From Neoconidiobolus thromboides FSU 785 (Eukaryota > Fungi > Entomophthoromycota): DNA of 64,000 nucleotides. The notes below the pieces were generated by a model. That model saw nothing but the letters and a program-made list of their open reading frames with translations, did no database searches and had not been told where the DNA came from. This document shows positions 2,093 through 31,031 of the stretch, one piece after another (within the stretch, counting starts at the first letter, position 1; each line of letters starts with the position of its first letter). The DNA is taken from contig MU626281.1 of the NCBI GenBank assembly GCA_025603075.1, forward strand, positions 1 through 64,000. Reading direction: 5' to 3'. Made by a program: the position numbers and the translations under genes.

Positions 2093-2911
2093 CTAACTTG
2101 GTGCCGAGTTTGGCTCTGGCTCATTATCTTTATTTTCAAGAAGATGTCTAAAATCAGCCTGAGTTTTTTTTTTCCCATGGTTTTGAAGTACGATGTGTGA
2201 GTTTAGATGATTTAAAGTACCATAAGATTTTTTGCAGTTACTATAAGTGCATGCAAATACCCTGTTAATTTCTTCAAACTTGCGTCTTATCCTCTTAGGC
2301 TTAACTATGGTTGTTAAAGTTCCTTTCCCCAACGGATTTGATTCGATTAGATGTGCATTGTTGTAATAAAGATCTCTTTCGTACCCTCTGGATTGAATCG
2401 GAGTAGCTCGATTAATGTGACTAAAGTTGTTTCCTTGGTAATCCAACTTACCATTATAACTAAATCTTCTATGAATCTGCTCATTATGAGACACATGTTT
2501 GTAGTCTAAGTTGTTTGTTTCATAAGGTTTCAACTCCCTAAAAATCGGCCCAGTTCCATTGGCATTAAGTCTATGTCTCATGGGAGTCAATGCTCCCTTT
2601 GGAATGACATCTGATAAAATATCCCTCAACGGTGGTAGTTTGACATTCTCCGTTGGCTCTCTATATAAATTAGGTATGGGGTGCTGGTTTGGATTAGATC
2701 TATACATACCTTGATGCGGAATATTATAGTAATAATTCCTCGAGCTATAGCTCATCTCATTTTTGTAGCGACTCTTTGATACTGATGAGTCATTTATATA
2801 TGTCTGTTGTGTATAAGGTAAGGTAGTGTAGGGAGTACTCTGATAATAAGCATTTGAAGTTTGATTGAGATGGTTATTTGTGTTTATTAAATCCGTTTTT
2901 TTGGGGTTCAT
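2093..2911 (-). CDS. CON7: Con7/Vta2-family single C2H2 zinc-finger transcription factor (ZF1, 272 aa)
   Basis: KRIRRKFEEINRVFACTYSNCKKSYGTLNHLNSHIVLQNHG matches the Con7-type signature as I recall it (KRPRRRYEEIERMYKC..CEKAYGTLNHLNAH). Single-exon ORF; LPPLRDIL motif. Orthology not tested. Confidence 0.85.
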   Translation of the reverse strand: MNPKKTDLINTNNHLNQTSNAYYQSTPYTTLPYTQQTYINDSSVSKSRYKNEMSYSSRNYYYNIPHQGMYRSNPNQHPIPNLYREPTENVKLPPLRDILSDVIPKGALTPMRHRLNANGTGPIFRELKPYETNNLDYKHVSHNEQIHRRFSYNGKLDYQGNNFSHINRATPIQSRGYERDLYYNNAHLIESNPLGKGTLTTIVKPKRIRRKFEEINRVFACTYSNCKKSYGTLNHLNSHIVLQNHGKKKTQADFRHLLENKDNEPEPNSAPS

Positions 2912-4050
2912 GATAAAAATAAAAGAAAAGTTTTTTTTGAAAATTGTGATTTAACATAGGAAATATAACTAGATTAGTATGGCATCAAAAAAATTACCAT
3001 AACTATTGTGTGTTCTATAACTTATGCCATAAATTTATATTGAGTTAGGCTGCCTATAAAGTAATTTAATCTATTAAACTTATATTCAAATATTTTTATT
3101 GGTTATAATGACAGTGTGCTATGATAAAACATAGTTAATATTATCTAAATTAGACTTTGATACTAAAACTATAAAATAGAAATAAAAGTAAGCTACTAAT
3201 TAAATTTTGAAATACCTGGAATAACTTTTTATTTGGTAATATAAATCCAGAATAAACAGTATAAATATCCAGGTGGTAGAATTATGAGCTTTATTCCGTA
3301 TTTTTGAGTTCAACAAACCGAGTACTACCAACACATATTTCACTTTATAAAATACTTGATATTTAAAAAAGTGATAAAAGAATAGTAAACCAGAGGTGAA
3401 AGCAATTAAATGTATGAATTTAAAGTTCCAATATTTATGAACAAGATAGTAGCATATATATTAAGTTAAATAATACCCTTATTCCTTTAAGCGAAATAAA
3501 ATAAGGTTCTTCCACCTATGTTGGAGTGCTGTTTTGGTCAAAAAATTAGTTGGGATAACAGGTATTCTATTAAGTAACCTTATTAAAATCAGCTTTTGAT
3601 AATAATATTCCTCATAGCCTGAACAAAACTGATTGGGTGGAGTCGTCATATGACCTTATTTGGTAAAGTTATTTGAATTTCCTTAAATGTTAGTATTCAT
3701 CAAGAGCAATAGTTTTTGCCCATGGTGGGCTATAATTATCGGATGATATAAGTTCAATTTAACAAGAGTTCTATTTTAATTAAAATTGTTATATTTGAAT
3801 GTAAATTTTTGGATTGGAACAATATTTTGAAATGTAATTTTAAAACAACAATCAATCATGTTTTAAAAATAAATCAAAATTTAATAAATCAGCTATATTT
3901 TTATATAATATACTCAATTAATTCAGAGAGTAAATAATTATATTCCTTTTAAAAAAAAGTATATACCTATAAAACCTTACTGTCTTTTTACACTTGGGGT
4001 GATACCCTCAAAACTGGATTCCCTAAGCCAGAGTATATTTATTATTATAT

Positions 4051-4148
4051 GAGGATGTTTTTTTCGATTTCATTACTTTTCCATTTTTTAAGCACTATTT
4101 GAGTGGAAAGACTGTCAGTAAAATTCTTAAACACAAAAATACATCCCC
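4051..4148 (-). mobile_element. MITE copy (reverse)
   Basis: GAGGATG...ACATCCCC; ATAT on both sides. Confidence 0.85.
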
Positions 4149-4558
4149 ATATGTTAAATTTAAATCAAAGCTATAATCATAGGGGTAAGCTATCCTTCAC
4201 TAATAGATCGTATTGTTAATGTACTTAGAAGTTGGTAAGAAGGATTTAATTTTAAAACAACAAGTATTCATACACATAATGACTTGTTTTAGAACTTCAG
4301 TAATTTAACGAATTAATTTTACTAAATATTTATTATCATAGTTAGAAATTATAATACTCTTATCTAAAGTATAATTTTAATTTCAAGCATTTAGATAATA
4401 CTTTAGTGCTTAGATTTATATGAATTGGGAATTACAAAAAGTTTTACGTTTGAAGATATAAAATAAGTTACACATGCCGCTTTTGAATACGTTTATTATA
4501 TTAATGACTAGAAAAAATAACAAAAGAATAAAAAAATAAAAAACCAGTAAGATAGAGC

Positions 4559-5149
4559 TTAGTATTGGTAACCTGATGCAATACTCATCTTCTTATATGG
4601 CTCAATAGTATTATGCTTAAGTTTAATATGAGACTTTAAATGGCTACGCGCACCATAGCTTTTATCACAGTTTTCAAAGGGGCATTTAAACCTTCTGTCA
4701 ATTTCACTTGATTTTCTTCTTGGTCTTTTTTCAAATGAACCAATATTAAAGAAATCCAATTCTTGAATTGAAGCTGGAGAAAACGATATTTGGTCATGGT
4801 TAACTACGTTAATTTGTTCAATATCTTCCTTAGTTTGATATAAAATATCACCAAGCACTAAATGGATTGAAGGGAGTTTTTGTGATTGAACTGGTGGCTT
4901 GTTAGTGTCTTGATTGCTCATTACATCACCAAGAATTTCATTAATACTGGGAAGTAAATGACCATCATGCTTTTTTGTCCATGGAGGATGGATATTTACA
5001 AATGGTTCGCTCAAACTAGGTCTCTTTGAGCTACATTTATCTGAAGGTTCTGGTAAAAGACTATTATTGAAGTAGTAGTAGGAGGAAGTATTAGGGTTAC
5101 ATAAAGAAATATCGTTTTCCAAAGGATTTTGTAAAAGTAAATAACTCAT
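4559..5149 (-). CDS. Con7-like single C2H2 finger protein with divergent recognition helix (ZF2, 196 aa)
   Basis: KRPRRKSSEIDRRFKCPFENCDKSYGARSHLKSHIKLKH; two LPSI motifs; TATA-like element about 35 nt upstream. Confidence 0.85.
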   Translation of the reverse strand: MSYLLLQNPLENDISLCNPNTSSYYYFNNSLLPEPSDKCSSKRPSLSEPFVNIHPPWTKKHDGHLLPSINEILGDVMSNQDTNKPPVQSQKLPSIHLVLGDILYQTKEDIEQINVVNHDQISFSPASIQELDFFNIGSFEKRPRRKSSEIDRRFKCPFENCDKSYGARSHLKSHIKLKHNTIEPYKKMSIASGYQY

Positions 5150-5810
5150 TTTAATTTTGATATCAGAGTTACCATAATTCGCATTTATACTATTATTTTG
5201 TATAAAGAGCGAGTAAGGGGCAAATGAAAGTATGAAAAAACACTGGCGTTAAATAATTAAATACTGTATTTTATTTTGATTAAAAATTTTACCACCATTA
5301 AACTAAACATACGCCACTTTAATATAATGAAATATATTATAGCTTATTTAATATCCTTTGATATTCAATATAAATATATATATTGGTCAACAAAAATATA
5401 CTTTATAGCATTTATTAGCAATCGATATAATATATATATCTAGCATATAAATCAGTTAATTTATTACTTTAATATATTTCCATTTTTTTATCAAACCCTA
5501 AAACATACTTAAATAGTATTAAATGTATTCATACTATATATATACTAAAAAACGAAGGATATTTTAAAAGATGGGTGGTATTTTTTTTTAAAAAAAACCT
5601 TTTATCATTTAGTAAAAAGGAGTTATAATAGATCTGGGGAATTGTATTATAGATCGTAAGGCTTTATTTATTGGACCGAGATATCATATAAATTTTATTG
5701 CCGGTTAAGAGACTGGTTCTAGAGTAAAAGAGACTCACTTTATGCAATATAGTACTTTATTTTAATTAAATTGATAGAAACTAAATTTATTTAATTTCAA
5801 AACTATAATC

Positions 5811-5869
5811 TCAATTTTACTCAATTTTACTCAATTTTACTCAATTTTACTCAATTTTACTCAATTTTA
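5811..5869. repeat. 10-bp tandem repeat (TCAATTTTAC) x ~6
   Basis: Five perfect units plus a sixth lacking the last base, read directly. Confidence 0.95.
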
Positions 5870-6644
5870 AATCCAAGCACTTATAAATAATATACCAACT
5901 AACAAATTTAACCGATTCAAGATATGGGTTTTACTTCATAGCATTAATATCTTACTAAAATAGAATCTTACTTATAGATAATTATTTTTTATATTCAAAA
6001 GAATGGCATCTTAAATCGGTTTTTTAAAAATTTTACTACTGAAAAAGCGCCACATTTATCATTCATGATCATTATATAATATTAAAGCCATTATCAAAAC
6101 ATGAATTTGGGCTGAAGGAAATAAAGTTTACTAAATTGTTATTTTAAATTTTGCAGTCTCATACTAAATGCTTTCAAATATCATTTGGCAATTTTTGTTC
6201 AAACCAATGATTATCTAAAGTGCTATTTCCTGAAACAAAATAAATAACTCAAAATTAGTTTGGAAGTAACTTAATCATTTTTTAATAAACGAAAAAGTTA
6301 ATTGTGATTTGTTATTTTAGAACAAGGATTTTTCTTAAAACTTAATTTAGACATTTAGTAAATATCAATAAAAAACTTTAATTTTTAAAATAGTTTACTC
6401 CAATTACAAATTAAGGTGAACATGTTAAATATATTCTTTTATAAATAGTTTTTTTACATTTAGTTTTACACCATTCATTCTATCTATAGAGGATCAAAAC
6501 CCGATAATATTATTATTTTTTTAAAAACTCATAAAGTATACAAAATTATTAACTATTTAAGAACCAAAATACAATTTATTAAATAAACAGAAGTAAGCGG
6601 CAAGCAAACCACCTCTATATCTAGTTAATGCTAAAATTACATGT

Positions 6645-7217
6645 CTAGGGGCGAGTTAAATGATAAAATTCACAAGCTTTTCTTTTTTGGCCATGATTTT
6701 GATTTAAGATGTGTGAATTCAAATGATTTAGAGCGCCATAAGCTTTTGTGCAGCCCGGATGCTCACATTTATAGATACGTTTGACTTCTGAATAAAGTCG
6801 GCGTGGACGTTTTTGATGGAATCCAGCTACCGTACTAAAGGTGCTGTTTACTTGGTTAATAATTAATCTATCGCTCTTTGTATGCATAGAGTCTTCAAAG
6901 GTGGATGAGCAACCATCTTTAGGTGTTGTGAGTTCGCTACTAGATATTTCACTTCTCGTCCTTGACGTGTTATAACTATTTATATGTTTAATAACTTCAG
7001 ACAATGATGGAAGAGAAGCTGTATCTGGAGTATAATTATTAAAATTCATGGGTGGTAGAATTCCGTTTTCGGTAGGAGTAGCATTTCTGCTTGGGTTAGG
7101 AGTAGGGGCATAGTAAGCGTTGTGCTTTTCTTTTTTAAATTTTAAGCTATAGCTCACAATATCATATCCGATAGGAGCAGGAGTTTTGTTTTGAATAGAG
7201 TTATTAATGATAGACAT
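6645..7217 (-). CDS. Con7-like single C2H2 finger protein (ZF3, 190 aa)
   Basis: KRPRRLYSEVKRIYKCEHPGCTKAYGALNHLNSHILNQNHGQKRKACEF; LPPM and LPSL motifs. Confidence 0.88.
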   Translation of the reverse strand: MSIINNSIQNKTPAPIGYDIVSYSLKFKKEKHNAYYAPTPNPSRNATPTENGILPPMNFNNYTPDTASLPSLSEVIKHINSYNTSRTRSEISSSELTTPKDGCSSTFEDSMHTKSDRLIINQVNSTFSTVAGFHQKRPRRLYSEVKRIYKCEHPGCTKAYGALNHLNSHILNQNHGQKRKACEFYHLTRP

Positions 7218-7319
7218 TGGATTATTTACAAAAACACAAATTATGATATTATTTATTAAGGGGATATTTGTCTAAGGAGATAAGTATTAAACTTTTCAAA
7301 ATTAAGGAAATTTCTTTAG

Positions 7320-7330
7320 TTTATATACTT
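7320..7330 (-). promoter_or_regulatory. TATA box of ZF3 (AAGTATATAAA)
   Basis: About 100 nt upstream of the ATG; same decamer upstream of ZF4, ZF5, ZF6 and GPI2. Confidence 0.5.
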
Positions 7331-9336
7331 TGATATTCTCTATATATTTTTAAAATAGCTTTCTATTTTTTGAATAGATTAAATCATCCTGCTAATTTCT
7401 TACGCTTTGTTTATGAATATTCTTTAATTATTTTTAAAATTATTTTGATAAGGAGCGAATAAAATTATATTTAGATAACTAAATTAAAGGTAAAGTTCAT
7501 TATGGAATATTGTCTAAACCCGTGGATACAAATTCCATTTTTTGAGCTCTGTTAATTGGCCCTGGCTTACTAAAAAAGTCGCATCTACTTTTGAGGACTT
7601 TCTAAATGTAGCAAAATAGTTTGATGGATAATTTAATAGCTTATTCTTGAACTTTTACTAATACGACGCACATTTCATTAAGCTATAATTTCCTAAACTC
7701 TATAGTCTTCAATTAAGTTAAATTTTAAACGGATCCCAAGGTCAATGATATGTAATTAATAACATATACTATTAATAAAACTATGCTTGTTAGCTTTAGT
7801 ATGCAAAAAAAGAACTTCTGCATTAAGCACTTTCTATATAAAGAATAAAGGCACCTTTTGAATTACTTTAAAGCACATGAAATGTTAATTAATTAGCTTA
7901 GCTAGAATTCAAAGAACAGTAAACAGATGTCACCTGTAAGGTACAGTTTTAAGATAATTTACTAAATCTTTATTTTCGTTATACTATTAAGTTGAATTTA
8001 TTAGTGTACTCAAAATAAAATCCTAGAGATGACAAATAGAAGTTTATAATTACATATGAAATGACAGTTCAAGGGTTATATAAGGAGTTTATTGATGGTA
8101 GATTTTATTTTATATTTGGTTCGATTTCAATAATAACCATTTTATATATGATTTATCAATTTATTTGGCGGAATAAATGATATTAAATGAGAACATCTAA
8201 ATGCAACAATTAATAACAACAATCCTTGAAATCATCCAATTTACTAACAGAAATTTAAAATATACAACTCAAACTAAATAAGTAGTATGTATTTGCTTGA
8301 AATAGTAAAAAGGCAATTACATTGTTTTAAAATGAGGATGTGTTTAATTGGGTATTAAGCTAGAATAGGAACCATTTATTTTAAATTGAATGAAAAACAA
8401 CATAGATCAAGAAAATAGATCTTTTTGAAAGTATCGTTTCATTTAACAAATATTAGTTTATTATGCACAAATACTATAATACAAAGTAGAAAGCTGCTTT
8501 AAAGTGGTATATACTATTGATTTGTCTTATGTTGTGATAATATAATAAACTACAAAGAATTTTACATTTAGCTTAAATATAAATTTACTTTAGTATCCAG
8601 TTGGAATTTTTTCATTAGGATTTTCTATTATAGGATGACATAGATGCTTTTTGGACCATCCTGAACTTTTAGCTAATTAAATTTAAACATCACTTTAATT
8701 TGCTCCTAGCAACACCCTTTTAGTATTGCTTTATTAGTTCTTACATTACATTAAAGTTGATGACTACTGATAATAGCGTATTTTGTTGATTACGAAATTT
8801 ACTTAAAATGCATTTATATATGTATGGATGTAGCTTTTAAAATAAATATATCTTTATTACTTAAAATTTAATAGGTTTTTTCTCACTTTTCACACTGAAT
8901 TTAGAAATTTGTTTTTTCGCTAATTAGTTATTATAAAAGTCTAGTACGTATTTGTAGAAAAAAGAGATTTATGGTTTTAATGACTGAAAAAAGAGATTTA
9001 TTCATTAATAAAATGAGTACTTAACATAAATAAATAAATTATATTTAACAATATAAAATATATTCAAGCCCTTTAAAAATAATTGTTGAGGGCTTTAAAT
9101 ATTGACTAACCTTTATATACCTTAGATTTCCAAATCAGTTTATATTGTTAGCATATCACAGTTAGGTCTATAGCTTTATAGCATAGAAACATGATGCTAA
9201 CTTTTGTAGAATAAAGAATAGTAGCTTAACTTGTTTAAAGCGTTATAATTTTAGTACACTTATACTTTATTAACTCTATTCATCTTATTAATTTTTCATT
9301 TAATTTAAAAATACAAGCATCGCTAATGAATAGCCT

Positions 9337-9510: not shown

Positions 9511-11343
9511 TAGCAAATAAGATTAATAAAAATTTAATGAGGAGGGAAAATGGGTAACTTGCTCATAGCTTCTCTTCCTTGTTATTTACGGACAATCTAG
9601 CCATATCATTTATTATGAGTCGTAATTTTTAGTACAACCTTGTATATATTAGGATGTATATTAAATAATTAAACCACTCTTCAAATTCAACTTGTATTAC
9701 AACAAATAACAATATTGTTTTAATAGATAATGTTAAATCATTTACTATCAATTATTAAGCTAAAGTTTTTCAATTAAAATCTTAAGGGACCATAATAAAT
9801 TTAAAATTATAACATTTAATTTAGAATTTTAATTTATGGGCTAGCTTTATTGACTATACACATTGTATGAATTAAAATAATAAAATGTACAGTTTTTGTT
9901 ATACTTAATATATATAGAAGTGTATTCAAAAGTTGATCCCTGGTTTGAAATTTAAAATTTATTTTTAGGATTAACTATATTCTGTGTAACAGTTAGCAAT
10001 CTAAGTTGTGTTGTAAATAAAATCCGAAGATTTAAAAAATCAAATCTTTATAATCTAATTCTGCTTAAACTTTAGAGGTTTTTTAATAATTTTTAAGAAT
10101 AAGTTGGAGTTATTATTTCATTAAATATATATAATGTGTGCTTTTATTTAACCTCTTATTGAAGTTATTTTATTATTTATTAAGCTTATTATACAAGTAA
10201 CTTTTCTTTTAAAAAACTATTAGAGCTTAATAACTCTATAAGGCTATTTAGTTTCTTTTTGTTATAGATAGATTGAATGACCATATTTGAATAATTTTTT
10301 AATCGTTTAAAAGTTGATTTGTTTTAAAATTACCTGTTATTTAGCTTGAATAATATTATTAAACCGTTTATTGTAAAATAATAAAACTAACCATTTAAAA
10401 TATATTATGGTCCATTTAAACTAGATCGTCTGGTACGATATTATTTAAAAAATAGGATTTACAATGTCATGATTAAACCCTCTTTAAAGAATTAAGTGTC
10501 AAAAGTAGCTAGTGGTGTTTATTCTTGTATAAAAATAAAGAATAAATTCCTAGTAAAGCATTTTCTTATCTTTTATGAAAGAAATTGTCTAAAAATAGTT
10601 ACGTAGAACTTTTGTCTATAAATGTGTGTATTGTTTTAGTTGACTTTTAACTTTTACAATTGTACTAAAAACTAACTATTTATTATGATCATACGTTTAA
10701 TATGCTAAAAGTGTATATCAAAAATTACTCATTTTATTTAAAGAAAAAAACTTTGATGGCTGTAAGGTATATAAAAAACATGACATAAATTTCTATAGAA
10801 GCCAATTTAATAACAATTTATAATTATAATTAATAATTTGAGATAAAATAATGTAAAAATGGGGTTTTGAACTTTATAACTATTAAAAAATAAAATTCAA
10901 TAATAGAAGCGTATTCTTTAAATTCTTTTCTAATACTTGAGTTTATATAGTATTAAAATAATTTGTTATTACTTTTAATTATTATAAAAGTCTAGCTATG
11001 ATTAGTCAATATCGGCTTTTATACAAAAATAGCTGAACTATCATCATAGTCTTATAATAAAATTCTTAAACTTAAGGTCAATAAAATACTATTATGAAAC
11101 TATTTATAATGTGAAAAACAGAGTTGGACAGGGAAATCAAATATAGTCATTAGTTGCTACAATTGAAAGTTCTCGATTCTATTTTTACTAATATTTTTAA
11201 ATTTTGCAGGCTCAATTAAGCTTAACCAAAAACTACCTCAAAATTTTAACATCTTATACATCATAATACTTGAAAATTAGATAGAATGAGAAAAAAAATT
11301 CTAATTACTAGTGGTCAAAATAGGAACCAAATATTTAAAATAT

Positions 11344-11438
11344 GAGGATGTATTTTTTTGTTTAAGAATTTTACTAGCAATTTTTCTACTTAAATAGTAT
11401 TTAAAAAGCGGAAAGTGATGGAACCAAAAAAACACCCC
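11344..11438 (+). mobile_element. MITE copy (forward)
   Basis: GAGGATGTATTTT...AAAAAACACCCC; flanks ATAT/ATAG. Confidence 0.8.
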
Positions 11439-13217
11439 ATAGGATATTTAGTATTAACTCTAAAACTTAAATACATATCCCAGTGACTTTAAAAGTTAGC
11501 TTGATTATATTTCATCCAATGATATGATTATATCGATATACAAAAAATGTAAACGTTATTTTATAGAAACATAAAATTTAGTGTATAACTTTTTTCAAGC
11601 CAGTCCATTTCAGCTCAAACATACTTTAAAAGGCAATAAAACATACTTTAAAAGGTAACAAAACATAATTTGTTTAAATGAGATTTTATGCTAGTCTAAT
11701 TTTTAGTTATTTATTAGTCAGAAATTTTATAACTAGCATTTGTAGCTCTTATTATAGTTCTATTTATTTAGCTATTGTTTATTTAATAGTGTATGTTGCT
11801 ATTAAATATACTTAACTATTAATCTTTATTTAATTTTCATAGTTTGAAATACAGACAAATGTTATAACATAATTGTCACAATATCGTAAAACTATAAATA
11901 TTGCTGTAACAACCAAAGGCTTGCAGGAAAGGTGCTGGCATTAAGTATAATTTAACAAAGAATTTAATTAAGTTCGGCTTTAATACAGTTTAGCCTAAAA
12001 ACCTTAACAATCAACCCTATTAATATTAAAAAAAGCAAAACTATAGTAAGATGACAAAGCGCCTTAGCAAATAAATCAACTCAAATAGAAACCCTACTCC
12101 GTTATATTGGCCTGAAAGTTAAATATCATGCATTCCTACTGTTCTAATAGTTTGATCGGTAGTATATAGGTATACAATATTATACTTTAATGATTATCTC
12201 GGCAAATCTTTAATTTTGAGGCTATATTTAATGTAAAATCTAGTTTAATTTAAAAATAAACCTTTCTTTATTAGCTTAATTTATAACTTTATCCTTTATT
12301 TTTTATTAATGCAATTTATAAAAAACAGTACTAATCTGCTACCATCGGATTAAGGAATCATTTGCATTAAAATAAATAAAAGTAGTTTAATAATAATAGA
12401 ATAATAGTATGAAGTTTTAGATATAAATTTCAAGTTAATTTCGTTTCAATTGATTTTGAGTGCTTTAAATAGCTTTCACTTTATAAAATTTAAGCTATTA
12501 AACTAGTACAAAATGCTTACCTTTATCTACGTTTTATGAATCAATTTTAGCATAAATAAGCTAAATAGCTTTTATAAAAGTAGTTAGAAGGTACTCCCAA
12601 TCATTTTACTTCCATGATTTAAGTTATCATAACTCCAATCTAAAATAATTTTGCATAAAAATGCTATTCTTTTTATACTATATAGTTAACTCGCCATTGG
12701 CTCAAGCCTATTTTAATAAGTCTAGTTCAACTTTAGTATTAAATAATTTAATTTAAATAATAGTAACTTGACTATAAGCTTAATCTTAGTTTTAATTGTT
12801 AGACCTTTGAATTATTTACAAAGATCTGTCTTAGGTTTTAATATACTTGAAATACAATACTATTATATTTACAATACTAAATTTATATTTAGTAGATTTT
12901 AACATTTCTTCAAAGTCAAAATATTTCTAGCTTAAATTGAAGTGACTAAAATAAAATTTATAATGATTAAAATAAAGTATATTTTTATTAAATTTTTAAA
13001 ATAGATAAAATAATAGTATAGCAACTAAGCAATTAAAAAGAGTGGTTCGTGAATAAGATGAAAGCAAATTTACTGTTTTAATAGGTACTTCTCAATATTT
13101 ATTTATATTTATAAAATAGACACCCTTACTACAGTGAAACAAGTATAAGGAGCGCCTACTTAAAAAAATCGGTATATACTATAAATTCAATTTAATTTAA
13201 GCTATGCATTAATCTCT

Positions 13218-13230
13218 AAAAGTATATAAA
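13218..13230 (+). promoter_or_regulatory. TATA box of ZF4 (AAAAGTATATAAA)
   Basis: 60 nt upstream of the ATG at 13290. Confidence 0.55.
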
Positions 13231-13289
13231 TGATTTGAATACCATAACATTTATCTTTTAGATTACTGTTATTGATTCTGTCAATCAAG

Positions 13290-13724
13290 ATGTCAAAAAG
13301 TAGTAGTAGCACTAGGAACAATAGCTTAGGTTATATTATGGACCAAAGATCCTTCTCCTTAGATTTGAACTTTTATAACTTAAATCATAATGATCCTTCA
13401 TTTAAACTGCCTCCTTTAGAGTACATTCCACATTATCATTCTACGAATATACGTTTACCATCTATTTCAGTAGTATTAAAATCTATTAACGATGAGCAAT
13501 CTACTGCAGGAAGGATAATTTATAATAATCAGTCCATAAAATTGGTCTATAGTCATCGCAAGAGAAGGAAATCGTACGAAATTAACCGAAAGTTTAAGTG
13601 TAGTTATCCAAACTGCAATAAATCGTATGGAGCCTTAAATCATTTAAATTATCATATTAAAAATCAAAATCATGGAGAGCTTCGAAGAGCTAAAGAATTC
13701 AAATCTAAATGTTTTCAATTTTAA
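13290..13724 (+). CDS. Con7-like single C2H2 finger protein (ZF4, 144 aa from ATG 13290)
   Basis: RKRRKSYEINRKFKCSYPNCNKSYGALNHLNYHIKNQNHGELRRAKEF. The ORF-track start at 13272 is TTG; the first ATG is 13290. Confidence 0.87.
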   Translation: MSKSSSSTRNNSLGYIMDQRSFSLDLNFYNLNHNDPSFKLPPLEYIPHYHSTNIRLPSISVVLKSINDEQSTAGRIIYNNQSIKLVYSHRKRRKSYEINRKFKCSYPNCNKSYGALNHLNYHIKNQNHGELRRAKEFKSKCFQF

Positions 13725-17814: not shown

Positions 17815-17824
17815 AAGTATATAA
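17815..17824 (+). promoter_or_regulatory. TATA box of ZF5 (AAGTATATAA)
   Basis: About 100 nt upstream of the ATG, followed by a T-rich leader with TTTTTGA repeats. Confidence 0.5.
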
Positions 17825-17925
17825 GGTAACACAAGTGGAATTTTTGATTTTTTTATTCTCAATTTTTGATTTTTAATTTTTGATTTTTTTTAATTTATCG
17901 CTCTTTAAATAAACTGAGCTAAAAA

Positions 17926-18615
17926 ATGAATACGTATACTACTCAGCGTCAGACTTTTAATTCTCCCATTATTTCCCCAAATAGATACAATAACTATGAG
18001 TATCGCCAACACCATTCACGACAATCTATGTCAAGCCACTATGAAACAAGTCCTTCATATCATTATACTAATGAAACCAAAGCCGTTTCAGGCTTACCAA
18101 ACCATGGATTCAATGACTTTAATCATCATTGTCGAAGTGTCAGACTTCCTTCCTTAAGAGAACTTTTAAGATCCCCACGCATCGATAATACCCACATAGT
18201 ACCAACTCCTGTTAATTATAATGATATAAGAGCTAGAAAAATGTCGGAAACCAACTTAAAGCCCTATGATAGCAGTTATCATAATTATCCTAGGGAATCC
18301 AGCTTTTTAAGAACCGATCCGGTGCTTTATAAACATGGAGTTAGATCCAATTATATGGATAATTTTTATTCACCTTATAATAGAGGGCCAGATAGCTTAA
18401 GCGATAATAACTACCTTCAAGGTCCAGATGGACATAAAAAAAGGCCAAGAAAAAAGCATCATGAAGTTAATCGAGTCTTTAGATGCGATTATCTTGGTTG
18501 CGATAAAAGCTATGGTGCTTTGAATCATCTCAATACTCATATCTATACCCATCATGACAAAAAAAGAAAGAGAAAAGCGGAAGAATTTCACCACATTACC
18601 CGCTTTTTAAGTTAA
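17926..18615 (+). CDS. Con7-like single C2H2 finger protein (ZF5, 229 aa)
   Basis: KRPRKKHHEVNRVFRCDYLGCDKSYGALNHLNTHIYTHH; RLPSLRELL motif. Confidence 0.88.
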   Translation: MNTYTTQRQTFNSPIISPNRYNNYEYRQHHSRQSMSSHYETSPSYHYTNETKAVSGLPNHGFNDFNHHCRSVRLPSLRELLRSPRIDNTHIVPTPVNYNDIRARKMSETNLKPYDSSYHNYPRESSFLRTDPVLYKHGVRSNYMDNFYSPYNRGPDSLSDNNYLQGPDGHKKRPRKKHHEVNRVFRCDYLGCDKSYGALNHLNTHIYTHHDKKRKRKAEEFHHITRFLS

Positions 18616-20042: not shown

Positions 20043-20135
20043 AGCGATATTTTTTGATTTCATCACTTTTTACATCTTTTAAGCGCTATTTGAGCAGAAA
20101 AATTGTTGATAGAATTCTTAGAAAAATATATTTGC
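20043..20135 (-). mobile_element. MITE copy (reverse, degenerate)
   Basis: GATTTCATCACTTTTTACATCTTTTAAGCGCTATTTGAGCAGAAAAATTGTT matches the family reverse strand. Confidence 0.7.
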
Positions 20136-20307
20136 ATGTTTATACACAAATATTATATTATTTATAATTAATCCTATTTTATGCTTTAATCTTATTAAAT
20201 TGTTTTGATTAAAAATAACCAAAGTTTTTAATGTATCTCATATACTGAGTTTTTGGTTGAAAAACTTTCCTTTTACAGCTTTTCACAGCCATTACTAGTT
20301 ATCATTT

Positions 20308-20403
20308 GGGGATGTATTTTTATGTAAGAATTTACTAACAATTTTTCCACTTAAATAGCACTTAAAAGATAGAAAAAGCAATAAGACCAAAAAAAACACC
20401 CCC
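20308..20403 (+). mobile_element. MITE copy (forward)
   Basis: GGGGATG...AACACCCCC; ATTT duplicated on both sides. Confidence 0.88.
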
Positions 20404-20988
20404 ATTTATTAAAAAATAATATCTTTGTCATGAAGCTAAAAATTAATCCAACTTTAGAATTAAATTAACTTTAATTTTAATTGAAAAACAAAAGACGAAA
20501 AAAGCTACTTAGTAGTTTAATTTAAAGTTATTAAGTTTAAATAAATTTTATAGTTTTATGATATGTGGTTTTAGAATAATTACTTAAATAAATTAAAAAC
20601 TTTCGTTATTAACATTAGGGAAAAATTTAAATCTAATTATTGTAATCAAACAATAAGAGAGTAATAAATTCAAGATTCAATAACTCTGATTTGTTTTAAT
20701 TTGGCAAATAAAATCCTTTTTTTGTTATAGAGGGTTAAAGGTTAAGGTTAGGGATGGTAAGGTCAGATCTTAATAGTTTTCTGCAGCTATATAACAACAA
20801 ATCAATATTTGGTTTTTTATGCAAACCAATCATTACTAAAATAAAGCTATATAGTTGGTCAAAACAACCTTACACTAATTTTAGTTATAGCTGGAAACTT
20901 CGTTTATACTAATCCTCTGTTTAAAATGGTGGTTAGCTTTTGAAATAACAGTACATTTTGGATAGTGTAATCATTGTGACTATCAATT

Positions 20989-21086
20989 GGGAGTGTTTTT
21001 TTTGACCCCATTATTTTTTCATTTTTTAAGCGCTATTTAAACAGAAAAATTGTTAGTAAAATTTTTAAACACAAAAATACATCCTC
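20989..21086 (-). mobile_element. MITE copy (reverse)
   Basis: GGGAGTG...ACATCCTC; AATT duplicated on both sides. Confidence 0.85.
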
Positions 21087-21127
21087 AATTTTAATGCTAC
21101 TTGCATTTTTAAATAAAATTTGCATAT

Positions 21128-21215
21128 AAAAATATCCTTTTTGTTTAAGGTTTCCAGCAATAATTTTTTTACTCAATAGTGTTTAAAAAATTGGAAAGTG
21201 ATCAAAAAACACCCT
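21128..21215 (+). mobile_element. MITE copy (forward, degenerate)
   Basis: ACTCAATAGTGTTTAAAAAATTGGAAAGTGATCAAAAAACACCCT then ATAT; left end eroded. Confidence 0.6.
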
Positions 21216-22270: not shown

Positions 22271-22272
<2 letters not shown>

Positions 22273-22658
22273 CTGTTAATTTAGATATTAATTTACAACT
22301 TGATTAAGAATTAATATTTTATTGATATGAAATATCTATATTTTGAGGTTCATTGATGAATTTTATTTCAAAATTAAAATTGCCTAAGATAATGTGGTTG
22401 CAATTTAAAGCCATTTTTTTGTTTCAGGGCATTTTTTTAAAGAATTATTGGCTAATAAAATGAAAATTTAATTTTAAGGCTAATTTTTAATAGCTTGATT
22501 TAAGCTACAGTTCATCATAATAAAACAATATCCTACTTTCAGTAATTTAGCAATAAAAAACATTGAAATGTGAAATTTTGAATATAATAAAATTTTAAAT
22601 ATAAGTGAAATTTTACTAAATAATAAGCGAAAAAATTAATCTACAAAATATAATATGG

Positions 22659-23081
22659 CTAATTTTTGAATTCACTAGCTCTTCTCTTTGTCCCATGACT
22701 TTGAGCTACAATATGCGCGTTTAGATGATTTAATGCACCGTATGATTTGTCACAATTAGGATGTAAGCATTTATAAAACCTTTCAACTTCATGATATCGC
22801 CTACGTGGTCTTTTTTGGATAGCCTCATTAAATAAACTTATAAAAGCATATCCATTTTTACTTTTAAGTGGCTTCCCATTTAAAGCTTCGGCAAGGGAAG
22901 GTAAAGGCATATTATATTGCGAATTAGGTTCTAATGGGGGTAATTTTAAGTTATCTCTACTTAAGAATGTTTCAGTGCATTCAGTGTTTGGGGAGGCGCT
23001 ACTTGAAGAAATATAGCTCCTTGGTCTGAACTCAAATGGGTTTGGCAAATGTAAGTTATATTGACTTGAATATTTACTCAT
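22659..23081 (-). CDS. Con7-like single C2H2 finger protein (ZF6, 140 aa)
   Basis: KRPRRRYHEVERFYKCLHPNCDKSYGALNHLNAHIVAQSHGTKRRASEF; LPPL and LPSL motifs. Confidence 0.9.
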   Translation of the reverse strand: MSKYSSQYNLHLPNPFEFRPRSYISSSSASPNTECTETFLSRDNLKLPPLEPNSQYNMPLPSLAEALNGKPLKSKNGYAFISLFNEAIQKRPRRRYHEVERFYKCLHPNCDKSYGALNHLNAHIVAQSHGTKRRASEFKN

Positions 23082-23135
23082 TTATTTTAAAACTGATAGA
23101 AATTTAAATTAAAAGAGTAGTAGAATATTCATTAC

Positions 23136-23145
23136 TTATATACTT
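23136..23145 (-). promoter_or_regulatory. TATA box of ZF6 (AAGTATATAA)
   Basis: 55 nt upstream of the ATG. Confidence 0.55.
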
Positions 23146-25367
23146 TTTTTTGAAATTTTAAATGATTTTTTTGGGGTAGTCTAAATTGGGTTAAATCGCT
23201 AAGTTTTAAGAATCTCATTTTCAACTATCTACTATATATCCATCAACCTTGTGAATGATTTTACCAACTTAGGCAATTTACTACTAAATTTCCAACGTAA
23301 AATTTAAAATTTTGTCCATTTAGCTTTTGCATGGTATTTATTTACAGCCATGTTAGTAGTAACCTATTTTATAAATCTTTAGCCCATTTTGGTTAAATTT
23401 ATTTATAATATTATATGTGGCTTAAATTGAACTATTAGTTCTTAGTTGAGTTATACCGAAAAAAAGTTAGTTTTTATGTACTAGATAGGAACTCCAGTAA
23501 ATTCAGGTTAACTAAAAATATAACTCTAAATCACTACTTGTTTTTTACCCTGATTATCCCTTTTTTACTTAAAAGTAGACTAAAATAATTGTTAGTTTTG
23601 TTTTAGCTATAGTTTGCAATGTTTTGTTTTGTTTTTCAAAATAAAAATGGGTAGAAAATATTGTTACGATTTTGATCTCTTTAAAGTCCACTAGCAATAT
23701 GATAAATTATTTTCTACTTAAAAGCATTTAAAGTTACATATTAATGCTGTTTACTTTTTAAATAATTTAATATAAAGTATTTTTGAACACCAAATATTTC
23801 CAAAAGTGTAAAAACTAATGGTTAAAAATAAATAAATTAGATAACGTTAAAAAGATTTCATAATTACTAGCTTTCCTTAATATTTCAATTTTTACTAACA
23901 TGTTATTTTGTCTACTAAATTATAAAAAATCCTGTTCTTATTGATAAAAAAAACTATCCTTTTTTTAAATCTCCTGAAGTTTTTAATTAAAACATTCAAA
24001 CATTATCCTTGTTTTAAGGGCATTACCACATAGAACTATTCTTAAAAGCACCAAAACTTTATTATTATCATCAATGTTTAGATTATAAACAAGGAATTTG
24101 CTGATTTAGTTTACTTTAGCTTTTATTTAATAATCGGGAATTATACAAACTATATATAACCCTTAAACAAAGATTAATTTACCTCCAAATCTAATTAACC
24201 AGAATAAACTTAAAATGTGGTGATTAAAAATATAGTTTATAAAGTCGCTTCAGAATTGAAGAAATGTAACAATATTTTGAATTCTATTAAGTTTATTAAA
24301 AAAACTAAGTAAAACATTAATTGGTAAAAGTTACGGGACAACTTTTATTTTCAAACTATTTAAGGAGTTACATTATAAATACTATTATGTTTTCTTTTTA
24401 ATTAGTTTCAGTTATCATGACAAATTGTATTTTTGAGTTATAATACAGGGTATTTTTTGTCATTTGCTAATCATAAAGGTAATCATTTAATATCGGGATT
24501 AAACATTGGTAAGAGACGCGGGTAATAATCCGCAAAGTAACTTTATAGTCGTCATTAGTAATGTAAGTTATTTTTTTCCGTTATAGTAAGGTATATTGGT
24601 TTATGCCAAGGAAGTAAAAAATAATGATTAAATTAAAATATTATAATCTAGAATCTAAATTATTTTCTTTTTAGAAGCAAGATCATTAATTAGATCATAA
24701 ATGTTTTATCTTCAAGTTGTTAAAATTAATAATAGGAGTCTAAATAGTAAATATAGAATATGATCTTAAATTATATTAAAGGGTGTTTAAAACCCATTCA
24801 TTACTTTAATCAAAAATACCCTCATTTTTGTATTGATATTAAATTTTTACTTTAATATTTAATAAGAGTGTTTTATCAAGAACTTATAATTTAAGATACC
24901 ATTAAATTTAATTAATATAAAATTATATTAAATAAAAACTTTATTTTATCTGACTATAGTCCAAAGCTTTTAATTTTAGTTTAAACATAGGAGATGTAAT
25001 CTATATATAATTTTTAAAATTAGGTCATTGAAAAATGATATATAGATGTTGCTAGTTTTGTAAATACGGAGCTTCCTTAATATAGTCATTCCTTTATATC
25101 TTTATGATATTTATAAGTTACATCAAAATATGCACAAACATTATGAGTTTATTAGTTAAAAATAACATTGATTTTATTTTTAGATAAGAGGTTTAATTTT
25201 ATTTATAAATATCGTGTTTAAATTATAATAATACATCTTTAATTACTATATTAAACAAAAACAAACAAGTAATAAATTAAAACTTTTTGAAAACTAAACC
25301 TATAGACTTTATCACTTAATTAATAACCATATTTTAGCCCTAACCTTTAGTAAGGAAATTAATATAT

Positions 25368-25464
25368 GGGGATGTATTTCTGTATTTAAGGATTTTACTA
25401 ACAGTTTTTCCACCAAATAGCGCTTAAAAGATGGAAAAATTAATGAAGCCAAAAAAACATTCCC
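25368..25464 (+). mobile_element. MITE copy (forward)
   Basis: GGGGATG...ACATTCCC; ATAT both sides. Confidence 0.88.
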
Positions 25465-25778
25465 ATATCATAAACTTCACTTGTTTTTCTATTCACGTTT
25501 CAGATTGAAGTAAAGCGTCATTGGTTTTAAAAAGTTGGCAGGTTTTTAAGAAAAGATTATTTACCTTGGAGACAATTAAAATAAGTTTTAGAAAAATATA
25601 TGCTCTCTTTAGATTTAGGTATTAAGAAAAAATTATGAGATAAAAATTGTACTATTTCATATAGTAAAGCAAGACTTATTTATTGTTTATAAATAAATAT
25701 TTCAATAGAGTTTATGTATTCATTGTGTTAGTATCAAGACCTCTAATGTTATATATTTAATAATTAAAGATGATCAAT

Positions 25779-25874
25779 GGGAATGTATTTTTTTGTTTAA
25801 GGATTTTACTAGCAATCTTTCCACTCAAATAATGCTTAAAAAATGAAAAAAATAATGAAACCAAAAACATTCCC
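25779..25874 (+). mobile_element. MITE copy (forward)
   Basis: GGGAATG...CATTCCC TIR and family core; flanks CAAT/AATG do not form a clean TSD. Confidence 0.82.
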
Positions 25875-26466
25875 AATGCATAAAAAATCAATGGTTTTAT
25901 TACAGAAGATTATTCAGCTTTAGTCTCAACTAGCTATCAATTTTAGGGTATCTAATTTAAGTTCAAGTTAATTAATTTTCTCTTCTAAATAAAGCTATTT
26001 GAAGGTATATGTAGTGTGTCTATAAAAAATCATAAGCTTGTAAAGCTTTACAAAAGTGGTAAATCAGCAGGGGATAATGAAAGGGGATAATATAAGACTG
26101 ACTGTTTGAATATGACACCTAAATCCGGTATGAGTCTCGAGGAAGCCTAAATAAAGCTACTATTTCGCTTATTATTTGAATGATTATGTTTTTCAATGTG
26201 ATAATCAACTTATATAGGCTATGTACATATATTGGTTTATTATTTATAGAAGTTTCAAATGCCTAAAAGTTTCTCCATATTTTAAAAGAACTTAGCTCAC
26301 GTATTTTACGATATCAATGTAGTGTTTCTGATCATGGTATTATTGTGCATTATCCTTTTCAATGCTTTGATAGTTTTTATATAAAACTCCTCCTATTTGA
26401 TTTAATATTAAAGCTTCATATAATTTGTCTTAAAGAATAAATGCAACTTCCAAAAATAAAACATCT

Positions 26467-26565
26467 GGGAACACCTTTTTTGTTTCAGCATTAACTAATA
26501 GTTTTTTAAAAATTTTAATAGAAAATGAACAAATAAATGAAATCAAAAAAGACATAATCATCCTC
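26467..26565. mobile_element. Highly degenerate MITE-like relic
   Basis: GGGAAC..TTTTTT start and ATGAAATCAAAAAA..CATCCTC end; interior eroded. Confidence 0.35.
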
Positions 26566-29500
26566 ATAAATCGTCATGTTATATTATTTTGAGACTGATC
26601 ATAGTGTCGGTAGAGTCATATACTGCGTTAGATTTGGTCATTTACTAAAGCTATATTTACTAGATCTATGCTCAAAATAACATTGTAAGCACATTTTAAC
26701 ATAATTCTACATTGTCGTTTTAATATTAGTCCTGATATCAAGAGATTTAAATCTAGAATCAAATCTAACATCTAAGCCAAGTTTAATATAAATCCTAAAT
26801 ACCTACTCATAAAACTTCATAATAAGATATACATATGTAATTTTTTACTAATATTTATATAAACACTTCAGTCATAAAGACCAAGTTTAATATTTTATTA
26901 TGATGATATATTATAATATAAATTATCCCTTTAGTATACATCGAGTTTGTAAGACGTAACTCGAAAATAACATTATAATATAAATAGAAAAGAATCCGGG
27001 ATATGTAAATTTATATTAGATTTTGAACCTTGTTACTAGTGTATCCCCACATATATACTATCAGTTCAATTCAGGAGTCCAAGTATCATTTAAAATGCTT
27101 TACATATAGTTTGTTTTCATTATGTTAAGGTGCTTTATATTTTAATCTAAAATAGTATTTTTTATCCGCTTAAAAAGCTATTTTAGCCAAGACTTGATGA
27201 AAAAGTAGAATGTAAATGATATTAAATATATTAAAGCTGAGTAGTTTTTCGTAATAATTTTTATACTAGTTTCTATATTAACTTCCCATCAATGATTGGT
27301 TCAAATTTAGCTTTACTTACCAATAAAAGGTAGTTATCTAGTTTCTATAAAAATATGTATTGATATTTAAGTAATATTTGATGCCATTAAAAGTAAAAGT
27401 TTAAATTTAATGTTAGACCATCATTTTAGTATCTTGCGTTATTATAGTTCTTGAAAAAGTTCAGCATTAATTATAAAAGATCGAGGTGGTTTTCATTTTA
27501 CAAATATCGGCTTAAAGTAGTGTAGCTAAGTACAAAAAAATACACAATGTTGACCTTTCAATTGGTAAAGGTTCAAATTCCGTAAAATAGTGGCAACCAA
27601 TTGAGTTTATATAATAAGTGAATTTAGGTATTTAATTAGTTGATCTATCTTATTGAATTTGGGCTTGTACTAATTAAAGATTAATCGTATCTTTTTTTCG
27701 TACTTGGGTATACATATAAGATGCATAAACATGCTACAAAATCAAAAGGAGTTAAAAAAGTTGACTTGAAACTAGTAAGAATTTAAAAATATCCCAAAAG
27801 TTATTCGTAATGGTAGCTTTAGTCAATTTTTGAAACAAAGGTATGAAGAACAACGCTACATTTGGTTGTAATGACAAATGATCGAAATAAGATCCATTAC
27901 TTTAAGTAGTAGTAGCTCCAATGCAATGTTAGATTGCTGCTTTAAGAAGTAGCCGTAATATATAATTGAACGTACTATCCTAAGAAAGGGAAAGTTTAAA
28001 ATAGGAAATATAAATTCAATGGGTTATAATGCCCACTACACAAAACTAAACTTTAAAGTAGGTCATGAGATAGGTTGGTACTAGTAAATTACAAGTAAAA
28101 TGATCTATCATTATAATATAAAATGTTAAATTCAAATGTAGAATGTAAATGAATAAAAAGCATCTAGTCTAAAGCTAGAGTAAGTATGATATCATCACTT
28201 GATTCAGCTATTTTATATTTATAAGGAAAAGGGAACTTTAGCTGCTAAAACATACATATTACAGTTAGATACTCCATGAAATATAGTATAATATTTCGTG
28301 AAATTTAAATTAATTTTACTTTAGTTTTAATTCAACTCAAGTTCTAGATCCTTATTTTTAAACCTTGAATCTTAATGGGCAATCGTTTTGTATCTTCAGA
28401 ATTTTAATTATTTTTTCAGCATATTAATTGGGCTTTGAAATGCTAAAGATAATTATACTAATCTAGCCTTGATTAATAGAAGACTATTACATTCCTGAAA
28501 CTATGATATTATTTACTAAACAAGATTGCATACTTTGTTAATAAAAGTGTGTATGTATACGAAATTGATACTGAAATAATAGTATAAAGTTTTTACAAAA
28601 TTCATAAAAGTATAAGTACAAATAAGATAAGATACATAGATGAATCAAAAAGTTCGATTTGATTAAAGGTCAGTTGTACTAAAACTAATAGAAAAATAAT
28701 TTTATAGTTGGTTCACCTCGAATTGAAAATAGAAGATAGGTTTAAATACCAGTAAACTCCAGGCAAAACTTTTAATTAAAATTTTGCATCACATTTTAAC
28801 AAAGCATGGTTTATAAATTGACTTACTACTTTTTCCTTATTAACTACTTATGGTAATTTCATCAATAAATCGCTTTTATATTAATTTTAAAATTATAAGT
28901 ACAAAAAAAAGATACTAGCAATGATAATAATTAAAATAGTAGCATATTAGATTACATTTGTTTATAAATAATCTTATAGTTTAGTGTTATATCAATCCAA
29001 ATTATTAATTTTTAAGCAGTAAACTTTAAGAAAAATCAATTAACCAAATAACTGATTTTAAAAAACATTGCTATTTATTCTTAATTTGAGATGAAACCAC
29101 CTATAGAAGAGGATTTGAAATGGAAATTTAAGCTATCAATTAGTAACTTAAATTTTATTTCAATCTCCAGAAGCAAATTAAAGCAAAAAAAGACTTAATT
29201 ATAATCTAAAAGGATAGGGTTCATTTCATTAAATATTTTAATTAAATATTGATGTTAACATTTTAATTAAAATGTTATTGACTACTTTATTTACTTATTA
29301 TTAACTTTTTACAACTTCTATAATTGTAGGGTGTATTTTATTTCTCAATCTTAAATCGATTTTTAATTACCAAGATCTTGATTCATACCGAAATTCTAAT
29401 ACACAACATTAAAAAATCTATAATCCTAGACAAAATATTTACAATGCATTTACCAGTTAGTCTGTTATCTAACTTATATTCTAATAATTTCTTTGATTGA

Positions 29501-30539
29501 AATAAGAGTGAGAATAAATATTTTAAGAAAAATCAATTTAAACAGGCAATATTTGAGCCTCATTTGCATCCTTTTAATAATAAAGATGAATTAAATTACT
29601 TTTTATTAATCGAAAAAAGTGGATATCAGTAAATTTGTCAAGTATGGTCTTTAGCTAAATCAAATTTGATGGGGTGGGTCATTAGATGCAACGATCAAGC
29701 TTTGACGCAGATTTCCATCTTAGCTAAATTTACTAAATTTGAATCAATTTTGAAATATATTATTGTATTATTGTACGATCCTTGATTAATAATAATTATA
29801 GTTTTGATGATAAAAGAATTGACACAACCCTAACTTTTATTGTAATATCAGTACTAATAATAATTTATTATTCAAATATTTTTCAACTATCTTGGTGTGA
29901 TTAAGCTTTTATCGTTATAAAATATTTGAATAAAATAGGATTACCCACTGAATTAGCTATAAAATGATCTAACTATTTCTATATTTGGAGTTCTTAACAT
30001 TCAATAAGATTAACTTGCATAAATGCAGTCTAAATGCTAATAAACTTTGTTTAAAATTCCGCCAAATCTATTTTCTTTCTTTCAGGTTGAAATTTATATA
30101 ATCATTTATTTAGGCAAGAATAGTTTTACTTTAAATATTTGGGCTATAATGTAGATAAAACACAATTAGTGTCCAAATAGTCTGTTCATAATATGATATA
30201 TAGTTATCATAATATGTTTGAAAATATATTACTACCCTTCCTTAATAGATTAAACGCATGTAAACAAACTACAAACAGTTGCATAAAATGAAAAATTAAA
30301 TAAATTTAATGGCCCCAGATTAAAAGTATAAACCCCAATAATAATAAAGCTGTTCAACTTAAGTAGGAAATTGTTAAAATAATACTTTAATTTCCAATTA
30401 AAAGGGATTAATTTCTCGTTTTTATTTAAATCGTAGCCCCCTATTTTTAGTTATTAATTGAACCATCCATTTGACTATAAATAGCCCTCTATTTTACTTT
30501 TCTTTAAAATAAAATTTCTATTTTTTATTTTACTATACT

Positions 30540-31031
30540 ATGACTTTTTCCACTACTATCACTTTAAATAAAAGTATCTTGGATTTAAATCCTGCTTTAG
30601 ATTTAAACTATACAGTTGATTATCCAGAGCATCTATCTTCTCCTTCCTCTTCTTTTTCTTGCTCTCGTAGATCTTTTGACTTATATTATATATCAGACAT
30701 GAGTAGTGCTAATAAGCCTATATTTACTAAAGATATAGAATTACCATCTATCCATAGTATATTAGGAGATATATTGCAAGAGCAATCTCCTATTAGCAAA
30801 CAAGCTACTATAGTAGATAAAACATTTAATGAACGTGAGTGTAGTTTTATAAATATAATAGGCGAAAAAATAGTAAAAAGACCACGTAGAAAATATCATG
30901 AAGTAAATAGAAAATACCATTGTAATTATCCATATTGTACTCGCTCCTATGGAGCATTAAATCATTTGAATGCCCATATCAAAATGTTTAACCATGGACC
31001 TAAAAGAAAAGCCAAAGAATTTAAAGCTTAG
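30540..31031 (+). CDS. Con7-like single C2H2 finger protein (ZF7, 163 aa)
   Basis: KRPRRKYHEVNRKYHCNYPYCTRSYGALNHLNAHIKMFNHGPKRKAKEF; LPSIHSILGDIL motif; TATAAATA about 60 nt upstream. Confidence 0.9.
   Translation: MTFSTTITLNKSILDLNPALDLNYTVDYPEHLSSPSSSFSCSRRSFDLYYISDMSSANKPIFTKDIELPSIHSILGDILQEQSPISKQATIVDKTFNERECSFINIIGEKIVKRPRRKYHEVNRKYHCNYPYCTRSYGALNHLNAHIKMFNHGPKRKAKEFKA

Follow-up and report, generated by a model that had tools for sequence, protein, structure and literature searches.

The first half of the 64,000-nucleotide stretch analysed here (the window; positions 1 to 64,000 of the 165,807-bp scaffold MU626281.1, NCBI assembly GCA_025603075.1, from the entomophthoralean insect pathogen Neoconidiobolus (formerly Conidiobolus) thromboides FSU 785, so that window and scaffold coordinates are identical) harbours seven genes, referred to as Z1 to Z7. 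We regard them, with a probability of roughly 0.78, as a group of seven old Con7-family paralogues clustered to the exclusion of other genes, encoded as intronless short forms and acting as putative single-finger transcription factors. In plant pathogens and mushrooms, Con7 has been studied well as a master regulator of the development of spores and infection structures; it is nearly always present as a single gene. In architecture and organisation the locus is a variant of this known family; it is not a system of a new kind.

A cluster of seven single-finger genes

Each of the seven genes combines a shared C-terminal module, made up of a basic arm and one finger of the C2H2 type, with an N-terminal region that holds a short leucine-containing motif. 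The open reading frames (ORFs) are intact and without introns, they are the only ORFs of at least 120 amino acids (aa) between 1 and 34 kb of the window, and their orientations from Z1 to Z7 are - - - + + - +. Three of them lie on the minus strand at the left end: Z1 (2093..2911; 272 aa; module 2126-2314) with the motif LPPLRDIL at residue 92, the divergent Z2 (4559..5149; 196 aa; module 4562-4744) with two LPSI motifs, and Z3 (6645..7217; 190 aa; module 6648-6827) with LPSLSEVI. They are followed on the plus strand by Z4 (13272..13724; 150 aa counted from a TTG; module 13539-13721; LPPL and LPSISVVL motifs) and Z5 (17926..18615; 229 aa; module 18424-18612 with HIYTHH; LPSLRELL motif), and finally by Z6 on the minus strand (22659..23081; 140 aa; module 22662-22829; LPPL and LPSLAEAL motifs) and Z7 on the plus strand (30540..31031; 163 aa; module 30861-31028; LPSIHSIL motif). 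The exact proteins of Z3 and Z5 are on record (P0001 and P0028, respectively).

A hidden Markov model (HMM) of the shared module, run against the six frames of the whole window, gave seven matches of 83-103 bits (99 bits for Z7). Together with the ORF calls, this bears out the seven intronless ORFs of a preliminary description of the locus, which had been made from the sequence alone. An eighth copy at 26150-26209 was considered and attributed to chance, as the match reached 12.5 bits and had no flanking module in any frame. The public gene calls are in line with the further claim that no other gene is present in these 29 kb, as they contain Z1-Z7 and nothing else between positions 1 and 33025 of the scaffold. 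In these calls, Z1, Z4, Z6 and Z7 figure only as pieces of 50-83 aa (61 aa in the record of Z7). Exact-protein look-ups with full-length Z6 and Z7 found no match, the public models being shorter, and so yielded no evidence of transcripts, while the public annotation of Z1 and Z4 looks too short because RNA contigs span both full ORFs. The listed start of Z4 is the TTG at 13272, and the first ATG follows six codons on at 13290, giving 144 aa. A relative, P0002, begins MINSIKM where Z4 reads (L)ILSIKM, so the TTG may be a mutated ancestral start codon.

The module comprises, in this order, a KRPRR arm, x2-E-[IV]-x-R and the finger [FY]-x-C-x4-C-x-[KR]-[SA]-Y-G-[AT]-L-N-H-L-N-x-H-I; after the helix the second His follows 4-5 residues on, and then G-x-KR-[KR]-A-x-EF and the stop. 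Module identity among Z1-Z7 is 38-65%, and the invariant columns are R, R, E, R, C, C, Y, G, H, L, H and I. The preliminary description had attributed the whole set of motifs to every copy, which is right in outline and needs correction in detail. The basic arm with x2-E-[IV]-x-R is always present, with the arm variants KRIRR (Z1), HRKRR (Z4) and KRPRK (Z5). The signature C-x4-C-x3-Y-G-[TA]-L-N-H-L-N-x-H is exact in six copies, the exception being Z2 (YGARSHLKSH), which has a rewired helix (GARSHLKSH) and is devoid of the KRxAxEF tail. Z1, with the helix YGTLNHLNSH and the tail KKKTQADFRHLL..., reads KKKTQADF in place of KRxAxEF. In the usual finger numbering, helix positions 2 (Asn) and 3 (His) are identical in six of the seven copies, and position 6 is occupied in Z1 and Z3-Z7, in order, by Ser, Ser, Tyr, Thr, Ala and Ala. 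Position -1 is Thr in Z1, as in canonical Con7, whereas Z2-Z7 have Ala. Short-tailed proteins of the YGALNHLN type from species in which CON7 has expanded group with Z2-Z7.

AlphaFold, given residues 40-140 of Z6 and a family alignment of 72 rows, predicts a classical beta-beta-alpha finger, with a predicted local distance difference test score (pLDDT) of 90-98 over arm and finger, which superposes on fingers of KLF5, WT1 and Zif268 with a root-mean-square deviation of 1-2 A. In the PDB no solved structure was found to span the whole Con7 module, and the matches there concern the generic finger only.

The finger of Z1-Z7 is, judged by sequence similarity, that of the Con7 family, as the preliminary description had proposed. 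Local Pfam searches yielded only sub-threshold matches to zf-C2H2 and Zap1_zf1. By contrast, a 60-position profile of the module, searched exhaustively against 1.84 billion cluster representatives, recovered 1197 representatives at E<=1e-10, almost all with one match over positions 3-58 and with the consensus KRPRRRYEEIERMYKCGWNGCEKAYGTLNHLNAHVTMQSHGxKRTPEEFKEIRKEW. The assignment to Con7 is right because the close relatives of one of these matches, P0150 (E 1e-20), are named 'C2H2 finger domain transcription factor CON7', and because Z6 aligns directly with CON7 of Colletotrichum orbiculare (P0275) at 49% identity over 91 aa (E 2e-25). PF27979 is carried by every one of these CON7-named relatives of P0150, among them a protein of Penicillium oxalicum; the domain is called CON7_helical in the ESM Atlas (a feature search of which otherwise returned generic C2H2 clusters and was useful only for this name). 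Rme1 of yeast, considered as a possible Con7 orthologue, was dropped as a candidate, the Rme1 papers searched making no mention of Con7. Elsewhere, the chains P0012, P0015, P0016 and P0017 contain two to four Con7-type fingers each (the cluster of P0012 includes Serendipita indica), so that by its sequence the module is also multiplied inside genes, unless these are fused models of tandem copies.

What distinguishes Z1-Z7 from canonical members is the part that follows the finger. Canonical Con7 continues past EF with a long basic helical region (EFKEIRKEWKARKKEEE...), and its median length after the second His is 124 aa, versus 11-27 aa in Z1-Z7. As a proxy for PF27979 we used a profile of the 50 residues past the second His, derived from 224 canonical members: the scores were 73 bits for CON7 and 61 for a Mucoromycota member, while Z1-Z7 reached at most 9.7 bits, over the first 11-14 positions only, and by this proxy the post-finger helical region is found in none of the seven. 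The short ends are not an intron artefact, because RNA contigs run colinearly through the stops of Z1-Z5 and to the poly(A) site of Z1. On these profile scores, Z1-Z7 are short-form Con7 proteins in which the DNA-binding module is kept and the CON7_helical tail is gone. The same short form is present in several Entomophthora muscae proteins and in transcript-derived relatives.

Upstream of the module, the preliminary description had found the N-terminal regions to be unalignable, which is true of most of their length; apart from the motif LP[PS][LI]xx[IVL]L no common stretch can be aligned. This motif occurs once or twice per copy in all seven proteins (in shuffled sequences on average in 0.26 and at most in three of seven, n=2000), for example as KLPPLRDIL, RLPSLRELL and ELPSIHSILGDIL. 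It had been overlooked earlier, as had the absent helical region and the position of the array against the scaffold end. The motif is likewise present in all 14 entomophthoralean-type relatives collected and, as LPPLSQLL, in Mucoromycota-like Con7 members, and in the Z6 model it is predicted as a short helix with moderate confidence. Its LPPLxxIL form resembles the proline-containing leucine-rich export signal of HIV-1 Rev, a likeness which we take as a lead only. One Mucoromycota case, Halteromyces radiatus (L009:9575-10504), has a frame that stays open upstream of the public 199-aa model, contains LPPLSQLL, and is interrupted just past QNH of the finger, as expected of an intron. This model, P0006, which carries PF27979 in precomputed annotation, probably lacks part of its N-terminus.

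Compared with the Con7/Vta2/GCD1 subfamily (IPR039327 as cited in 10.1101/2025.09.11.675558; PF27979), a fungal-only family whose Mucoromycota members also possess an N-terminal LPPLSxLL-like motif, Z1-Z7 thus share the basic arm and the single YG[TA]LNHLNxH finger. They differ in size (140-272 aa versus ~330-670 aa), in the loss of the helical/coiled-coil region after the finger, and in forming seven clustered copies instead of one gene.

Transcription and selection

At least five copies, Z1-Z5, are transcribed. RNA contigs from four runs, X1 (identical to the window) and X2-X4 (from a close relative or a strain that differs slightly), were placed on positions 1700-7600 and 13000-18900. They cover Z1-Z5 colinearly, stop codons included and without splicing, and most of the spacer sequence is silent. 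Z1 is covered at 2069-2902, with poly(T) loose ends at 2038-2044 from which a poly(A) site can be placed ~50 nt downstream of the stop codon, and Z2 by low-depth contigs at 4478-5179. Contigs over Z3 (6568-7280) have good depth, and this copy is the deepest in X2-X4; those over Z5 (17870-18670) are very deep in X1. Z4 has weak cover, at 13042-13911 in X1 and 13349-13780 in X2/X3. The dominance of Z5 in X1 and of Z3 in X2-X4 hints at differential use of the copies. X1 alone also contains low-depth contigs in the spacers at 5837-6230, 14055-14754 and 15651-16897, which have no notable ORF and could be non-coding transcripts or carry-over DNA.

Comparison of the window with the strain of X2-X4 shows that Z1-Z5 are under purifying selection, Z2 being the most relaxed. 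We counted at least five synonymous and at least three non-synonymous differences in Z1, at least 14 and at least 13 in Z2, and at least three and none, among the differences listed, in Z3 (the counts for Z1-Z3 being lower bounds). Z4 has 13 synonymous and no non-synonymous differences (binomial p 5e-10), and Z5 four and none. In total, at least 39 synonymous stand against at least 16 non-synonymous differences, and the ratio of non-synonymous to synonymous differences per site (pN/pS) is ~0.10 (p 5e-16, binomial against the share of synonymous sites, for the differences listed). Also among those listed, Z2 shows an excess of synonymous changes (p 1.5e-4): the three differences in its arm-plus-finger module (codons 141-179) are all synonymous, and in its C-terminal tail codon 185 is changed synonymously and codons 189 and 191 non-synonymously. 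Indeed, the earlier proposal of old and retained duplications is supported by the module identities together with the transcription and constraint of at least five copies, and the opposite case that it had named, that of mostly untranscribed copies evolving neutrally, does not describe Z1-Z5.

An assembly artefact was likewise considered and rejected, as the modules diverge by 35-62% and the RNA contigs of the independent strain match five copies individually.

Relatives, age of the duplications and genomic surroundings

According to a preprint on GCD1 of Coprinopsis (10.1101/2025.09.11.675558), the Con7 subfamily is fungal-specific and single-copy in most species. The same source reports it as mostly single-copy in Dikarya, in accordance with the low copy number in ascomycetes assumed in the preliminary description, with the largest variance in copy number in Mucoromycota, and as rare in Zoopagomycota. 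Its Supplementary Table 9, which gives counts only and does not include N. thromboides, lists seven CON7 copies for Conidiobolus coronatus, 21 for Entomophthora muscae and four for Basidiobolus. With these counts it is doubtful that the multiplication is 'lineage-specific', as had been supposed: the entomophthoralean CON7 expansion is already on record as numbers, without description.

The gene tree of the module (67 columns; 21 of 32 inner branches open) groups Z2-Z7 with E. muscae, C. coronatus and short-form proteins (support 92/83) and places Z1 outside the Entomophthorales-type clade, with Mucoromycota- and Dikarya-type sequences; its longest branch is that of Z2. In approximately unbiased (AU) tests a single clade was not rejected for Z1-7 (p 0.10), Z2-7 (p 0.10) or Z3-7 (p 0.21). 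A single origin of the seven is thus neither shown nor rejected by this tree, and because its inner branches are poorly resolved and the AU tests reject no clade, the age and order of the duplications are not settled by it. Z3, however, is 61-65% identical to relatives in other organisms versus 63% to its nearest copy in the array, and this equal distance suggests that the duplications are old.

The surroundings of relatives were read at five loci, a small sample, with flanks of 3-10 kb. Two copies of C. coronatus are on separate scaffolds, where neither has a second copy within 10 kb, and one of them is surrounded by ordinary genes; two copies of E. muscae are ~48 kb apart on the same contig. 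In Halteromyces, of the Mucoromycota, a lone copy is situated in gene-dense DNA, and another lone copy, on a metagenome contig (25% G+C), in gene-poor DNA. A second copy was present at none of the five within the flanks read. Unlike the expansions of Entomophthorales and Mucoromycota at these loci, the copies on MU626281.1 form a tight and exclusive array, which among the five loci compared has so far been seen only here.

The G+C content of the window is 24%, and the spacers between the array genes are 76-78% A+T. They harbour an element of ~100-120 nt resembling miniature inverted-repeat transposable elements (MITE), which is present in many copies and both orientations (124-228, 789-878, 1067-1156, 4044-4164, 11340-11444, 20067-20406, 20982-21202, 25364-25867, 31541-31661 and 32368-33000). 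RNA-contig cover of the copy at 4064-4160 rises to ~8000 with many different flanks, and the element therefore occurs in many transcripts genome-wide. Z1 is located only 2 kb from the scaffold end, so that the left edge of the array is open and the array may continue beyond it. Just past the array on the other side, at 34378-39352, three tandem genes encode Ser/Thr-rich proteins, each beginning with a stretch like a signal peptide and ending in a hydrophobic one, in the manner of wall proteins of the glycosylphosphatidylinositol (GPI) type, the middle gene being broken by an assembly gap (37375-37629). Wall genes are regulated by Con7 proteins in other fungi; no link between these three genes and the array was seen. 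Further along, two tRNA-Gln(UUG) genes (51256-51328 and 52288-52359, both on the minus strand) are situated 1 kb apart.

Putative function and alternative readings

The products of Z1-Z7 are most likely nuclear, sequence-specific DNA-binding proteins, judged by their homology to characterised members of the family. PoCon7 of P. oxalicum binds TATTWTTAT in DNA affinity purification followed by sequencing (DAP-seq) and occupies chitinase promoters in chromatin immunoprecipitation with quantitative PCR (ChIP-qPCR; PMC12785316), and FgCon7 of Fusarium graminearum occupies the promoters of ABAA and WETA, likewise in ChIP-qPCR (PMC11237738). Correspondingly, Z1-Z7 would enter the nucleus by means of the basic arm and, with finger and arm together, would bind short AT-rich sites similar to that of PoCon7. 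In the GAGA factor, DNA is recognised with one C2H2 finger and flanking basic regions. Its likeness to Z1-Z7 consists in one finger after a short basic arm, without any sequence relationship, and the short AT-rich site of Con7 would be compatible with comparable contacts of the arm in the minor groove. Since the helices of six copies have the same base-contacting residues at positions 2 and 3 and vary only at -1 and 6, shared or overlapping targets would be expected. The copies would then differ mainly in the timing of their expression and in what their N-terminal regions recruit, and the rewired helix of Z2 may represent a new specificity or decay. TATTWTTAT, sought in the window as a possible sign of autoregulation, occurred 35 times in the array half and 38 times in the other half, i.e. 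without difference, and its excess over shuffled sequence is due to simple repeats.

Several points weigh against regarding the array as seven working transcription factors. The DNA binding, localisation and function of Z1-Z7 are drawn from homology, 3-4 bp are all that a single finger can read, and the tail that may help canonical Con7 to dimerise is missing. Z2 is weakly expressed and has a pN/pS of ~0.22 (for the differences listed). Depth taken from assembled contigs is a poor measure of expression, and transcription of Z6 and Z7 is only suggested, by the presence in the RNA runs of 0.07-0.14 of the sampled words of 22400-31200, about the size of their transcripts. Finally, the left boundary of the array is the scaffold end, and both the copy count and the short-form finding pertain to the 64-kb window.

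The same absence of the post-finger helical region in all seven copies lends itself to a different reading, in which the short forms are competitors that possess the DNA-binding domain only. By filling Con7 sites without activation, they would modulate or counteract one another or a full-length Con7 whose gene lies at another place in the genome. Their base-contacting residues, which are nearly those of canonical Con7, and the relative depths, which vary by sample (Z5 in X1, Z3 in X2-X4), would fit this model as well. We nevertheless hold it to be unlikely: the 85-205 N-terminal residues with a conserved motif under selection suggest an effector function of their own, a full-length Con7 in the genome is presupposed, and the short tails of several E. 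muscae copies indicate that this may be the normal form of the lineage.

Still more tentative, and in our view rather improbable, is the extension of transcription-factor function to a bank of clustered regulators peculiar to the entomophthoralean fungi, with copies that would share one DNA specificity, be gated individually and each drive or block one developmental fate. The gating would be exerted by separate promoters in the large private spacers and by nuclear import (KRPRR) against export (LPPLxxIL, in view of its likeness to the Rev signal). The fates in question would be the hyphal bodies formed inside the insect, the two kinds of forcibly discharged conidia (primary and secondary) and the resting spores. 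The stage-by-stage use that the preliminary description had suggested is conjectural too.

That the single finger serves protein-protein contact (dimerisation) and not DNA binding is very improbable. Some single-C2H2 proteins of Drosophila provide a precedent, with adjacent beta-strands, as described in PMC12774644, and the family has a conserved YSFV-like stretch (YSFV-x-[IL]PG) just upstream of the arm. In most copies of the array, however, this stretch is poorly conserved, being recognisable as YAFISLF in Z6 and CSFINIIG in Z7 and degenerate in the other five, and in the Z6 model it has low confidence (pLDDT 59-67). Moreover, direct binding of DNA by members of the Con7 family is documented both in vitro and in vivo (PMC12785316, PMC11237738), and the module matches the DNA-binding fingers of GLI, KLF and WT1. 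Least probable of all is that most copies are decaying duplicates without function: Z2, with its changed helix, lost tail, low depth and at least 13 non-synonymous differences, and the four copies known only as fragments in the public annotation could be cited in its favour, but seven frames have stayed open despite 35-62% module divergence, Z3-Z5 together show 20 synonymous and no non-synonymous changes among the differences listed, even Z2 retains its synonymous excess (p 1.5e-4), and five copies are transcribed. For Z1-Z5 such decay is largely refuted.

Some entomophthoralean fungi are used for the control of aphids, and they are hard to study. The insect pathogens among them have the highest tabulated Con7 copy numbers, while the look and the arrangement of these copies have so far been undescribed. 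The locus on MU626281.1 shows, in one species, that the copies are reduced to the DNA-binding module and an N-terminal motif and are held together within 29 kb. The array is thereby a natural experiment on the role of the helical tail that is missing from these Con7 proteins, and a compact, deletable target for studying how these fungi switch among their several spore types.

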